A stretch of 64,000 bases of DNA from Thalia democratica. Its lineage: Eukaryota. Shown in pieces: positions 3,356-37,795 of this stretch (position 1 is the stretch's first letter; the number at the start of each line of letters is the position of its first letter). The DNA is taken from assembly GCA_965202585.1 (NCBI GenBank), contig OZ241832.1, positions 39,618,001 to 39,682,000 of the forward strand, read 5' to 3'. Below the pieces are notes generated by a model. It was not told where the DNA came from. It was given only the letters and a program-made list of their open reading frames with translations, and did no database searches. A program made the translations under genes and the position numbers.

Positions 3356-3766
3356 TTAAGCGCGTTCACCACGGATGCGACGGGCAAGTTGGATGTCTTT
3401 TGGCATGATAGTTACTCTTTTGGCATGGATGGCACACAAGTTGGTATCTTCGAAAAGTCCGACCAAGTAAGCTTCAGCAGCTTCTTGCAGAGCCAGGACT
3501 GCAGAGTTTTGGAAACGCAAGTCAGTCTTGAAATCTTGAGCGATTTCGCGAACTAGGCGTTGGAACGGCAGCTTGCGGATCAAAAGCTCAGTGGACTTCT
3601 GGTAACGACGGATCTCACGAAGAGCTACTGTTCCCGGGCGGTAACGATGAGGCTTCTTTACGCCTCCAGTTGTTGGTGCACTCTTGCGTGCTGCCTTCGT
3701 GGCAATTTGTTTCTTGGGTGCTTTTCCTCCAGTTGTTTTTCTTGCAGTTTGTTTGGTACGAGCCAT
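3356..3766 (-). CDS. H3: Histone H3 variant, copy 1 (S10T, R17K, L20I, A31T, S86N, M90L, A96)
   Basis: Intact intronless 136-codon ORF with the full H3 tail and fold. Substitutions were read against canonical metazoan H3. Confidence 0.97.
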
Positions 3767-4869
3767 CTTTAATTTTAACTAAATAACCTATTTTATTGAA
3801 ATACACTTATTATTATTTTTTAGCTTATTTCAACTTTATAAAACAGTTTAAATTTCTTATTGTTCTGAATATATTTATAACTTAATAGTTTTAATTTTTT
3901 ATTGTATAGTCATTACGGTCTAAGAACAGGAAGTTTAGATTAACAAAATTCAAAAACATTAAAATATTCAATAATAATTGGTCAATAGGCATCGAAAAAA
4001 ATACAATTTAAGTTTTTTAATTAAAGGTGAAACAAACTTAGCTAATCGGCGTTTTTTAATACAATGAACTTCATAAAACTAACATAAAGTAATTCATCTT
4101 TAATATTATTTTTAGTAACCCTACTAATTAAAAACTATAACTTAAGCTGTACATGGATTAAAGTCATTTTGAATCATTAAGCCCCTGCAACTTCCATATG
4201 GTTTAGTGTATATCAATTACTCATTTTAGTATATATAGTATAACTTTAAGTAATTATAATCAACTTGCTTGATATTAATTGCATTTGACCTAAAATACAT
4301 ACATGAGCAAGTATATCATTACTGCTAACGAAAATAATGTGTAGTACTATCATAGCTTATATGAATTTTTTTTAAGTTTCTTTTAAAAATCGAAAACAAG
4401 TTTAATTTATTTTTATTATAGTTTGTTGAAGTTTTCCAAAACAATGTTTAAACGTTAATTCAATGTAAATAAAAAAAAACAAACAAGATAGTTTTTAACA
4501 CCTTTAAAAACAGATGCTTTATTTTTTAGTTGCTAAAGCTAATAGTTATTAATGCTTAGATAGTCGAAAACTTTAACCGTTCTTAACACGTTGTTTATAT
4601 ATTTAGATTAGTCAGTCAAAAACTAAAATACTAATAGTTTTGATAAATAATTTATAGCTTTCGTAGTCTAGTGGGCACAGTTTTTTTTTAATAATTAAGT
4701 ATGCTTTGCTATTGAAAAGATTTATGACCACTGATTAGATGAATATCATTGATACGAGCCTTCAAGTTAGAAATACAGTTGTACTTTCTAAAACTAACAA
4801 AATAAAATATTGGTGCGAAAGTACTAAAACTTTGAAACAAGTTCATGATTCAATTTAATATTATAGTCT

Positions 4870-5825
4870 TACTGAATTTTTTACGAAATTTCAGTAAATG
4901 ACTACAAAAGATTATTAAACGACAATATTAGTAAATTACAAAAAAAATACTGATTAAACTATGAAACCTATTAATCTAAATTCTAGATGTTATTAATTTA
5001 ACTAATAATTTAAAAACACATGACGGAATTTAAAAAATTCGTAAAAAACGCCTACATAATGGTTAAAAACCATTAAGAAAACTTTTGGACTCCCAATTGT
5101 AGATTAATCAACACTTCTAAGTCCGAGGTAGGTCGTGTATGTGAGGTTAAAATTGCCTGCATCAATAAAGCTGTGCGTTTTAAATCTAACTTATGCAGTG
5201 GACTGATACAGACCAATTAAGTTGTCTCACTGGTTTAGAAAAACAAACGTACAGCTTTTTTAAGTTTGATGTAGTATGTTTTAATCCTTTTATCAGTGAA
5301 GAACTAGTAATAAAATCACTAAAACTCACTGGTAATTATACTAGCGTACCTAATGAAGACTTGAGTCTAATAAAAACGCATGTAGGTATTACTTTATGAT
5401 CTAGAAAACCTAAGGTGCAAGAAAAGAGCGAACAACAACAGATTTTTTTTGATGCAGCGCAGGGATAGTTTATGGGTGGAGAATTTTACAAATAGTAGGA
5501 CTTTTTTCGTTAGACGGGTTGAATAATATATTTGGTTTAGAAATAATTGGGTTGTACAAGGACGATGGTCTAGTTGTACTGCCTAATTCTTCTGGCTTTT
5601 AAGTTGAAAAGTTAAAAAACAAACGCACGCTTTCTTCAAGTCTAAAGGGGTTACGAGTCACTGTTTAATCACCAATGATGACAACTGACAACCTGGATGT
5701 GAAACTCAACTTGTATGATGTCTCTTATATGCTTTATAAAAAGTAAAGTTCAAAAATTATGTTTATTAACAAAAATTTTAGTCACCAGAAAACTTCAGAA
5801 AACTAATACTAAATTAAATTAATCA
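4870..5825 (+). mobile_element. Decayed PLE RT fragment (unit 2)
   Basis: Homologous to 1075-2039; contains LYKDDGL. Confidence 0.85.
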
Positions 5826-7126
5826 GGGTAGGTGTCAAATATGCACGAAGGGATATTTTTTCGCAAAGACACTTTTGCAGGATGTCAATTTTGCATGGGT
5901 GGTCACTTTTGCACGAAGACACTTTTGCACAAGACAAAATCTTTTTATTTTATTTAATTTTTGATAACATAAAGATTTTATGTTTACTGTCGTTGTTAAA
6001 GTCCCGTTATATTTATAATCTTTGTAACTAGTTTAAGTTTGAACAGTATAACTCATTATACAAATTTTTAACATACTTGTTTTACAATGAACAAACTGTA
6101 AATAAGTATTCTAAATTAAGATGATAAGTTTTATTGTAAAAACATTTTTAATTCTCTTTTTTTCATTATTAGCAATAGAAATAAATTTTATCAGTTTTCA
6201 AAATACGTTTAGTCAACCTTTTTTCAATTTTTTTCTCTTCAATTTTGTAGCTCTTTCAGTACTTTAAATCGAATCGAATAAATTTGCTGTTTTTATTTTC
6301 AATAAAAAAAGAGAAAAGCAAAATTAATAGTTCATTAAACATGTTAACTTAAAACGGAAATTTTTATCTTCATGTCAGCAAAGTTTCGACACTTTGTTTC
6401 ATGTAGACAATGGTATATATTTAATCAACTTCAAATAAAATATTTCGAAGAATTTAGAGTATAGGAATTATACTTTTTAAACATTTACTTAATTTATTGT
6501 GTAATTAAAGAATATCAGATTGATAAAACGGCTTAAAATTTTACCTATTTTCAAGTTTTTAGCTTAGTTCAATTTCAAAATCCATTAGGCAATTACGTAT
6601 TATTTAAAAATCATAAGGAAGTATAAAAAGTAAAGCGAGATTGGTTTCTGGATTAGTTCATTATAAAATTCTAAGTTTTTGTTATTATATAATAATCATG
6701 GAGCAAAAAAGCAAATGGAAATTTATATGTTGAAGAGGCCATATCTTAAACGTGATTTATTTCTTAATTCATGCTAAAAGGAATTTATGAAAATAAGTTT
6801 TGGAAAACCTGTTAAAATTAAGCAGAAAACGCTATTTTATAAAATAGTTGAAGTTAAAATAGTTAAGTTGGACTAAACAACTCAGTAAGTTTAACTGATA
6901 GTAATTCGACAATTGAATTTGGTTCGATTAAACTTAGGTTAAACAATATAACACTATGAAAATACTTTTTGAACATATTTTATTACAAAAATACTTCTAC
7001 TAGAAATAGAAGTGAAATATCTTTAACATATACATAAAACATACATAAATAGAAATGTTAGAATAAACCATGGAAAGAAACTGATAAAACTTATAACACG
7101 CCAATAACACTACTTTAGACATTAAG

Positions 7127-35780: not shown

Positions 35781-36460
35781 TGTTAGAAGTTTTATCCAAA
35801 AGTACAATCAAATATGTTTTTTAAATTTTTACTATCACTGTTAATTCTAACCCTTACCCCCCGTCAGTAATTTTTTTTTTTTGTTTTTTTAATATTTATT
35901 TTTTTTGTAATTTTGATTTTAACTTTTGGTAGTCATTTTTATTTATATTTTTACTATCACTGTTACCCCTAACCCTTACCCTCAGTTTGTAACATACTTT
36001 TTCTTTTTTTGTTTTTTTAATATTTTATCATTTTGTTTTTATCTTGTTTTTAGTTTTAATTTAGTTTTTAAATTTGATTTTATGCTTCTTTTTCACTATC
36101 GTGCAAAAATAATCTTTGTAAAAAGTGAACCTCCGTCCAAAAGTGTCTTTGTGCAAAATCGTCCTTTGTGCAAAAGTGTCCCTTGGTGCATGTTTGGCCA
36201 TATATGCAAAAATATCTTCGTGCATAATTGACCCGTTCCGAATTGGTTAACGTTTAAATAAAACATCAAGTGACAAAGAAAAATGTTTGAAAACAAAACA
36301 GGATCACGAGTTAATGATAAAAAAAAGCGGTTACAATGATAAACTTTAGTTTGAAAAAATAGAGAAAAACTAAACAGACCATATAAATAAAAGAAAACGA
36401 AATATAGTTTGGTAAAATCCCTTATTTAGTAGTTCAATTTAAACAAATATTGGCAGAGAA
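35781..36460 (+). mobile_element. MITE right arm (35781-36239) plus PLE 3' fragment (36240-36460)
   Basis: Same composite and junctions as 28413-29100. Confidence 0.78.
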
Positions 36461-37385
36461 ATTATAAATCACTAGAATACGAAAACAATAAATTATATAT
36501 TTAAAAAATTCTAGTATTCTAATTTTTTGACTGACTAATTAAATATATAAATAACTTATTAAAAACGGTTAAACTTTTCGATTATCAATGCATCAATAAC
36601 TTTTAGCTTTAGCAGCTAAAAATAAAACATCCATTTTAAAGGCTCTTAAAAACTATCTTGTAAGTTTGTGTTATTTTATTTACATTGAATGAATATTTAA
36701 CATTGTTTTGGAAAACTTCAACAAACTACAATAAAAATAAAGTAAACTTGTAATTTCTTTTCAAAAGTATCTTTTTAAAATCCATATTAGCTATCGTAGT
36801 ACTACACATTATTTTCGTTAGCACTGCTAACTTAGCAGTTATACTTGCTCATGTATGTATTTTAGGTTAAAGGCAATTAATATCAGAGCCAGTTGATTAT
36901 AATTACTTAAAATTTTACTATATATACTAAAATGAGTAATTGATACACACAAAACCATATAGAATCTGCAGTGGTTAGCAATTACTAATGACATTAATTC
37001 ATGTAAAGTTCTCGTTTGGTATGGTTATTTAAAATATTTTTACGATGTTTTACTTCATGTTAATTTTATGAGGTTCTTTATATTATAAAAGCATCGATTA
37101 GCTAAGATTGTATGGTCTTCAAATAAAATACCACAATTGTATTTTTTCGATGCCTATTGACCAATTAAAATGGAAAACTTTAATGTTTTTGAATTTTGGT
37201 GATTAAAACTTCCTTTCTTTAGTCTATAATGACTATACAAAAAAAATTTAAAACAATTACGTTTTCAATATATTCAGGAAAAAAAAGAAATTGAAACTAC
37301 TTTTTAAACTTTTTAAAGTCGAAATAAACTAAAAAATAATTAAAATTACGTTTCAATAAAATAGGTTATTTAGTTGAAATTAAAA

Positions 37386-37795
37386 ATGGCTCGTACCAAA
37401 CAAACTGCGAGAAAATCAACTGGAGGAAAAGCTCCCAGGAAAAAATTGCCACGAAAGCAGCTCGAAAGAGTGCACCAGCAGCTGGAGGCGTAAAGAAGCC
37501 TCATCGTTACCGCCCGGGAACAGTAGCTATTCGTGAGATCCGTCGTTACCAGAAGTCCACTGAGCTTTTGATCCGCAAGCTGCCGTTCCAACGCCTAGTT
37601 CGCGAAATCGCTCAAGATTTCAAGACTGACTTGCGTTTCCAAAGCTCTGCAGTCCTTGCTCTGCAAGAAGCTGCTGAAGCTTACTTGGTCGGACTTTTTG
37701 AAGATACCAACTACTGTGCCATCCATGCAAAGAGAGTAACTATCATGCCAAAAGACATCCAACTTGCCCGTCGCATCCGTGGTGAACGCGCTTAA
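37386..37795 (+). pseudogene. H3: Histone H3 variant, copy 10, frameshifted (1-bp deletion in an A run at codons 18-20; also T32A, L48I, M90L, L109Y)
   Basis: ATG to TAA spans 410 bp. The A run at 37440-37445 has 6 A versus 7 in copies 8 and 9. This could be a homopolymer sequencing error. Confidence 0.8.

Follow-up and report, generated by a model that had tools for sequence, protein, structure and literature searches.

Histone H3 is among the most conserved of proteins, and changes next to K4, K9 or K27 are rarely tolerated in animals. When metazoan histone mRNAs lack the 3' stem-loop, their ends are formed by cleavage and polyadenylation, and SLBP no longer couples them to S phase. Genes of the H3mm/H3.5 type, which are among the closest described parallels to the locus considered here, are dispersed retrocopies derived from H3.3. 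The locus is an array of H3 genes in the 802-Mb genome of Thalia democratica, most of which falls within a window of 64,000 nucleotides (C8:39618001-39682000; the window is the whole stretch of DNA that was analysed, and the coordinates of the copies are positions in it). The array consists of lineage-specific H3 variant genes, a type of gene that is already known elsewhere.

In the mouse (H3mm) and in primates (H3.5 and H3.Y), as in the array, there are many species-specific, intronless H3 genes that have few changed residues and no stem-loop, and those of mouse and primates are polyadenylated (PMC4574566, PMC5895627); some of these are proven to be functional and tissue-specific, and others are doubtful. 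Two reports describe the H3mm genes as H3.3 sub-variants (PMC5895627, PMC13744785). The array differs from H3mm and H3.5 in that it is nearest to a replication-type H3 (type B, one of the two canonical sets of this genome), keeps SAV(L) rather than AAIG, and arose by duplication of units within one tandem/inverted array. Replication-independent H3.3 shares with the array the missing 3' stem-loop, a presumed polyadenylation, and S/T31 (in the intact copies). Unlike H3.3, however, the array genes have SAVL rather than AAIG and no introns, and their synonymous divergence (dS) is 0.83 to H3.3-like genes versus 0.57 to type B; the genome also has ordinary H3.3 genes (L015 and L026).

Extra lineage-specific histone paralogues are present in other invertebrate lineages as well, in Hydractinia (PMC5011920) and, reportedly, in Oikopleura dioica (PMC3156773). 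In Hydractinia, H3.3.2 has a stem-loop, which is a 3'-end signal unusual for its histone type, and the canonical histone repeat contains a 5S rRNA gene, as does the type A repeat of the Thalia genome (PMC5011920). No array of H3 alone, with some twelve genes that all differ and lack a stem-loop as they do here, is described in that study, and its variants have expression and proteomic support, whereas the present array is known from sequence alone (PMC5011920). Histone orphons and birth-and-death families resemble the array in having copies away from the main clusters and both intact and decaying members; unlike orphons, the array is a whole family with a common new 3' end and upstream region, and it is under significant purifying selection. 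The general literature yielded these comparators but no description of such an H3 array.

The best explanation, to which we assign a probability of roughly 0.55, is that the array is a young, locus-confined family of intronless H3 genes of replication-independent type, evolving under relaxed purifying selection with birth-and-death turnover.

Layout of the array and loss of the 3' stem-loop

The original prediction had counted ten H3 copies, and a tblastn search with one copy finds exactly ten loci in the window, spanning 3356-37795. The array itself starts upstream, where two more copies (-4266..-3859 and -445..-38) precede the window start, giving a total of 12 copies (c01 to c12) in 42 kb; a further 25 kb on the upstream side and 36 kb on the downstream side contain no other copy. 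The ten copies in the window comprise nine intact open reading frames (ORFs) and one, at 37386-37795, with a frameshift that the prediction had left unmentioned. The prediction was right that the array contains no other core or linker histone, as tblastn with H4, H2A, H2B and H1 queries from the same genome gives no match in 104 kb (beginning 30 kb before the window and ending 10 kb beyond it), and that every copy is different, as all 12 predicted proteins differ.

Self-comparison reveals tandem units of ~3.77 kb that are 85-93% identical, some of them shortened. Eight units (c01-c08) are on the minus strand and four (c09-c12) are on the plus strand, with the two blocks head to head. Each full unit carries in its spacer a piece of ~945 nucleotides (nt) from a dispersed repeat, which has more than 1000 candidate copies in the genome at ~82% identity. 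The piece derives from the interior of a larger element, and its insertion therefore predates the amplification of the unit. No Pfam domain is found on the spacer ORFs, including those of the dispersed repeat.

The most informative feature of the array is that its genes have lost the histone 3' stem-loop. No such structure is found in the array by regular expression, at the Rfam gathering threshold (RF00032), or at Rfam E<=10. By regular expression, all type A and type B H3 genes examined, which represent the two canonical sets, have a stem-loop 15-20 nt past the stop; it reads GGTCCTTTTCAGGGCC, with GGTCCTTTCCAGGACC as the form of a single type A copy, or GGCTCTTTTAAGAGCC, with GGCTCTTATGAGAGCC as the form of a single type B copy. 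(It should be noted that at the gathering score RF00032 recognises two stem-loops, which follow an H2B gene of type B and an H1 gene of type A.) It is this loss, and not richness in H3, that sets the array apart from other H3-rich arrays. Without a stem-loop, the mRNAs would be unable to use SLBP/U7 processing and would have to be cleaved and polyadenylated.

Around each coding sequence (CDS), the copies also share flanking sequence, ~300 nt on the upstream side and 250-300 nt on the downstream side. The upstream region contains GACCAAT at ~-202 to -227, intact in 8/12 copies, and TATAAA or TTTAAAG at ~-74. Downstream, an AATAAA is positioned at +134 to +147 in ten of the copies; in c06 the motif has mutated, and c07 lacks it through a deletion. 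When the whole genome is searched, the upstream region matches only at the array locus (the 12 copies and two fragments), and the 3' flank likewise gives 12 matches, all at this locus.

Short-read unitigs from two samples, which are labelled as different organisms and come from different studies, are present in 30/30 bins of 7100-12300 (5.2 kb), and unique spacer pieces have a depth of ~40-50x with 0-7 differences. Consequently, this stretch is no assembly artefact. In one of the samples (X3), some unitigs within 7574-12279 leave out 3821, 4635 or 947 nt and so connect positions separated by roughly one unit; either the array is polymorphic in copy number or these unitigs are chimeras formed across repeats.

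Descent, selection and rival explanations

The genes encode a core histone H3, with a match to the histone fold (PF00125) of E 6.6e-48 over residues 8-132 and an identity of 92-94% to the canonical H3 of the genome. They depart from replication-dependent H3 in having neither an RF00032 stem-loop nor H4, H2A, H2B or H1 neighbours, in carrying S/T31 rather than A31 in the intact copies, and in carrying SAVL rather than SAVM at residues 87-90. At the sequence level they are H3.3-like in S/T31, as H3.3 has S31 and, in plants, T31, and in the missing stem-loop, with polyadenylation suggested by the AATAAA at +134..147 alone. An H3.3 replacement variant is ruled out, because residues 87-90 are SAVL in all copies and true H3.3-type genes have AAIG at this patch. 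CENP-A (cenH3), which has a divergent N-terminal tail and a longer loop 1 (CATD), is ruled out by the gap-free alignment of both tail and fold to canonical H3 at the identity given above, and an H3-carrying mobile element is ruled out by the restriction of the family flanks to the array locus. With regard to retroposition, the copies are intronless, but so are type B genes, and they are arranged in one array of 3.8-kb units rather than dispersed; any hallmarks of insertion, such as a poly(A) remnant or target-site duplications, would no longer be recognisable at the dS that separates the family from type B. Features of a pseudogene or orphon are absent from the family as a whole (omega, the dN/dS ratio, is 0.32) and are seen in c12, which has the frameshift, and in c07, which has a lost stop and regulatory lesions.

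In a CDS tree, the family is monophyletic with respect to all other H3 classes sampled (ultrafast bootstrap, UFboot, 99), and the outgroups attach beside c03 and c07, which retain the standard KQTARK tail. In addition to the dS values of 0.57 to type B and 0.83 to H3.3-like genes, dS is 2.8 to type A and has a mean of 0.09 within the family. These results bear out the prediction of a lineage-specific, locally expanded H3 family distinct from canonical H3; the family is nearest to type B. The non-synonymous divergence (dN) from type B is only 0.044 at a dS of 0.57 (dN/dS ~0.08), which argues that the founder lineage was strongly constrained for a long time before the recent amplification. Ectopic conversion from type B was considered and ruled out, as the synonymous signature of the family is intact in 12/12 copies (codons 1-35 and 81-115 inspected).

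Compared with type B, L90 and A96 are present in all 12 copies and I20 is present in 11. The prediction had I20, L90 and A96 shared by every copy, which is correct for the ten in the window; of the two upstream copies, c02 has L20. The same residues are not special to the family: A96 is the norm in type B, one type B gene has L90, H3s with both L90 and A96 are common in other organisms, and I20 and the K19-I20 pair recur in this genome's own H3.3-like genes.

Selection on the family is relaxed but present, and it is purifying. Using the codon model GY+F3X4 (M0, a single tree, kappa 2.75), omega for the family is 0.315, and omega=1 is rejected (twice the log-likelihood difference, 2dlnL, ~26.6). 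Omega is 0.23 for the core (residues 39-135; 2dlnL 23) and 0.43 for the tail (residues 1-38; 2dlnL 6.6), and it is 0.008 for type B. The original prediction had named dead orphons with dN/dS near 1 as its refutation; with a value well below 1, this does not hold for the family as a whole. There are 56 variant nucleotide sites, 31 synonymous (S) and 25 non-synonymous (N). Private variants, seen in a single copy (15 S : 12 N), have the same composition as shared variants (16 S : 13 N; Fisher p = 1), and each class falls below the neutral expectation for N (P<=0.005); the equal ratios indicate that constraint has not visibly lapsed in recent times. Within the aligned unit, the CDS is the peak of conservation (94-98% versus 79-93% in the spacers). 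The GC content at third codon positions (GC3) is 0.42-0.46, as in type B, amid a region of 27% GC, and 11/12 reading frames are open with spacers that have diverged by 7-21%.

On the reading of a young family, the array descends from a stem-loop-bearing type B H3 gene. Its founder lost the stem-loop, carried its own upstream and 3' flanks, and kept its protein nearly unchanged across the dS of ~0.57 that now separates it from type B. A unit of ~3.8 kb, holding the gene and the transposon fragment, was then amplified to 12 copies in two head-to-head blocks. Thereafter birth-and-death has left most copies intact, with c07, c12, and perhaps c06 and c10 decaying. Cleavage and polyadenylation of the mRNAs would probably take place at the conserved AATAAA ~140 nt past the stop, and polyadenylation would uncouple them from S-phase-linked turnover of histone mRNA. 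The array may provide H3 when DNA is not being replicated, or its message may be stored, as in oocytes or embryos, and the number of copies may provide dosage; histone supply outside S phase is probably its role. The proteins are predicted to retain the fold of a histone and, from replication-type H3, the SAV(L) patch, together with S/T31 in intact copies, like H3.3. T6A and R8K, which occur in most copies, would break the A-R-K-S/T context of K9 but not that of K27, and from known enzymology they would be expected to weaken R8-dependent K9 writers and Aurora-type phosphorylation of S10. Most differences among the copies are probably tolerated, conservative drift and not designed diversity.

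A number of observations weigh against this reading. The CCAAT is intact in no more than eight copies, and neither the upstream region (79-82% identity between units) nor the 3' flank (~85%) is better kept than neutral spacer. By chance, an AATAAA is expected about once per 400 nt in DNA of 27% GC, and its shared position shows descent, not function. Likely damaging lesions are spread over several copies (the frameshift, the lost stop, G102E, L109Y, P121Q, I124S and K14E), and many degenerate H3 copies are present elsewhere in the genome. Gene conversion or recombination among the copies violates the single-tree model behind omega. In two marine metatranscriptomes the only matches are of 36-53 nt, inside conserved CDS, and give no sign of expression. 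A 15-billion-protein collection has no exact entries for eight array proteins, while types A and B are present there, and two scans of Joint Genome Institute (JGI) metagenomes with family-specific CDS patterns give 0 matches. Further searches found no contig on record that encodes one array protein that was looked up, and a homology search with c06 is saturated by ordinary H3s, with a best identity of 95-96% and no relative with the tail of the family among the 120 best matches listed, where 90% clusters may hide variants.

Many of these same points would fit a recently amplified and now silent block of H3 orphons that is turning to pseudogenes, in which the low omega would be inherited from a founder that once functioned, or would reflect gene conversion and too short a time for decay to show. 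This alternative, which we consider possible but doubtful, is favoured by the one frameshifted copy, the two copies with a lost stop, the multiple regulatory and coding lesions of c07, the AATAAA lost from c06, upstream regions kept no better than spacer, an omega ~40x that of type B, the absence of an RNA or protein trace in the collections searched, and the many broken copies in other H3 arrays of the genome. However, the private variants, which are the youngest, include 12 N where ~19-20 of 27 would be expected under neutrality, the same ratio to S as among the older shared variants. In addition, nearly all frames have stayed open despite the divergence of the spacers, GC3 has not drifted toward the AT-rich background, and the CDS remains the part of the unit that is best conserved.

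Another alternative holds that adaptation has diversified the copies into H3 isoforms with rewired modification crosstalk around K4, K9, K18 and K27, with germline-restricted function or genetic conflict as the driver. This is the reading that the original prediction put forward as possible, along with stem-cell restriction. As it stated, positions 6, 8, 10, 17, 19, 31 and 32 vary; these substitutions adjoin modifiable lysines and recur in varied combinations, the tail has a higher omega than the core, and L109Y required two nucleotide changes in one codon. The prediction had also listed K4, K9, K14, K18, K23, K27, K36, K56, K79 and S28 as invariant, which they are in the ten window copies, but upstream c01 has K14E, and the pattern of fixed lysines with variable neighbours is not statistically distinctive: eight variable residues among the 38 of the tail would miss all eight lysines with p = 0.12. 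The tail and core do not differ significantly in N/S (p = 0.40), and together these two tests give no statistical sign of targeted rewiring. The omega of the tail is still below 1, and the changes are chemically conservative (R/K, S/T, T/A, L/I), as relaxed purifying selection predicts. Adaptive diversification appears unlikely. A further elaboration is more speculative yet: several copies might be expressed as distinct polyadenylated isoforms, in which T6A, R8K, S10T, R17K and Q19K would make K9 and K18 refractory to certain writers or readers and leave K27 intact, creating chromatin 'flavours' that co-evolve with the H3.3-like arrays. Finally, it is hardly credible that assembly or sequencing spuriously expanded one gene or that noisy reads created false differences, since, although the sole frameshift sits in a homopolymer and repeats are hard to assemble, the unitigs of both samples cover the stretch examined and the copies differ by substitutions whose N/S pattern is coding-aware, many of them common to subsets of the copies.

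Individual copies and other H3 genes

The coordinates of the copies in the window and of the associated features are given in Table 1. In the tail, A6 occurs in 8 of the 12 copies, K8 in 9, T10 in 5, L10 in 1, K17 in 2, K19 in 3, and A32 in 3; residue 31 is S or T in all intact copies and A in c12. Core variants include N86 (in 5), Y109 (3), H125 (3), I120 (2) and D132 (2), and changes found in a single copy are K14E, D77E, G102E, A114T, V117M, P121Q, I124S, A135V and L48I. Both c02 and c07 have G132D together with a lost stop codon (extra YILSK). Copy c07 is probably decaying, and c12 is either a pseudogene or the product of a homopolymer assembly error. The nearest non-histone genes are downstream, where two C2H2 zinc-finger ORFs lie on the minus strand at 42172-42750 (192 amino acids) and 44178-46220 (680 amino acids).

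Table 1. Window positions of the H3 copies and of associated features of the array
Feature	Position	Strand	Remarks
c03	3356..3766	-	intact, 136 codons; tail KQTARKTT...APKKQIATK...APTT; N86
c04	7127..7537	-	intact; A6, K8, S31, A32, N86, M117, H125
Dispersed-repeat fragment, ~945 nt, in spacer of 3.8-kb unit	8656..9600	+	part of a larger repeat with >1000 candidate copies in the genome
c05	10862..11272	-	intact; A6, K8, T31, E77, N86, S124
3' flank of the family (c06 as example)	11540..11800	-	no histone stem-loop; AATAAA at +134 to +147 in 10/12 copies
c06	11800..12210	-	intact; A6, K8, T10, T31, N86, H125; AATAAA at ~+146 now ACTAAA
Upstream region of the family (c06 as example)	12211..12510	-	GACCAAT at -202 and TATAAA at -74 from ATG
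c07	14546..14971	-	stop lost, +YILSK; L10, K17, Q121, D132; CCAAT mutated; poly(A)-signal segment deleted
c08	18347..18757	-	intact; nucleotides 99.5% identical to c06; CCAAT changed to CCAGT
Junction of minus and plus blocks	18758..25238	.	head-to-head; unit fragments, no H3
c09	25239..25649	+	intact; first of plus-strand block; A6, K8, T10, S31, A32, I120, V135
c10	30439..30849	+	intact; K19, S31, E102, Y109; distal upstream region including CCAAT replaced
c11	32472..32882	+	intact; T6, K8, K19, T31, Y109, T114
c12	37386..37795	+	frameshift from 1-nt deletion in A7 run at codon 19, rest in frame; A31, A32, I48, Y109

The H3 complement of the genome comprises at least 377 candidate loci, and 46 loci have the H3.3 AAIG motif. 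Type A H3 (L62, S96, M130) is encoded in tandem H3-H4-H2A-H2B-H1 quintets of 7.2-9.9 kb on several chromosomes, and type B H3 (A96, S114) in dispersed clusters with H4, H2A and H2B. The two canonical sets are separated by a dS of >2 and resemble the early and late histone sets of sea urchins. A 5S rRNA gene is located inside the type A quintet repeat in two arrays (L004:3995-4117 and L005:5578-5687) and was not found in the array at C10:25.6 Mb (L001). An NCBI entry titled 'MAG: histone H3 [Alteromonas sp.]' (MCP4280932.1) has exactly the type A H3 protein sequence, which is probably contamination of a bacterial metagenome bin by a eukaryotic histone repeat. Close relatives of the H1 of this genome turn up only in ENA metagenomes and in a source with the label 'merc'; the best matches that carry a name, from decapods, corals and a nemertean, have ~50% identity.

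As for the ordinary H3.3 genes, L026 has two exons and no stem-loop, and L015 (C2:33627125-33630156) is an intronless gene with a histone stem-loop after it, whose product is the H3.3 protein standard in animals (S31, AAIG, S96). Replication-type H3.3 of the latter kind has been reported in Hydractinia and in the sea urchin.

The present array is not unique in the genome. A second H3-rich array, at C2:55.63-55.70 Mb (L019-L025), holds at least 14 intronless H3.3-like variants, most of them with a 3' stem-loop. Its residues include the AAIG patch, H17, R19, I20, S24, N31, Y78 and G135; several of its genes are broken by frameshifts or in-frame stops, and in two others the tail has been rewritten and lacks the K27 context. 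One H2A gene and one H2B gene are located at the edge of this array. The presence of other H3 variant arrays indicates that diversification of H3 is a genome-wide trait.

Significance for histone evolution

The array is a case in which reading frames have been kept under selection although the stem-loop, by which the supply of histones is tied to replication, has been lost, and it thereby constitutes a natural experiment in which a replication-type H3 becomes replication-independent. It also tests how far the nucleosome tolerates variation in the H3 tail (T6A, R8K, S10T and S/T31), and if the copies are expressed, they would be ready natural mutants for studying the specificity of writers and readers. 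Perhaps the weightier point concerns the genome as a whole, as its unusually large and diverse H3 complement, in which the two canonical sets are deeply diverged and several arrays of variants occur, makes it attractive for studies of histone birth-and-death.

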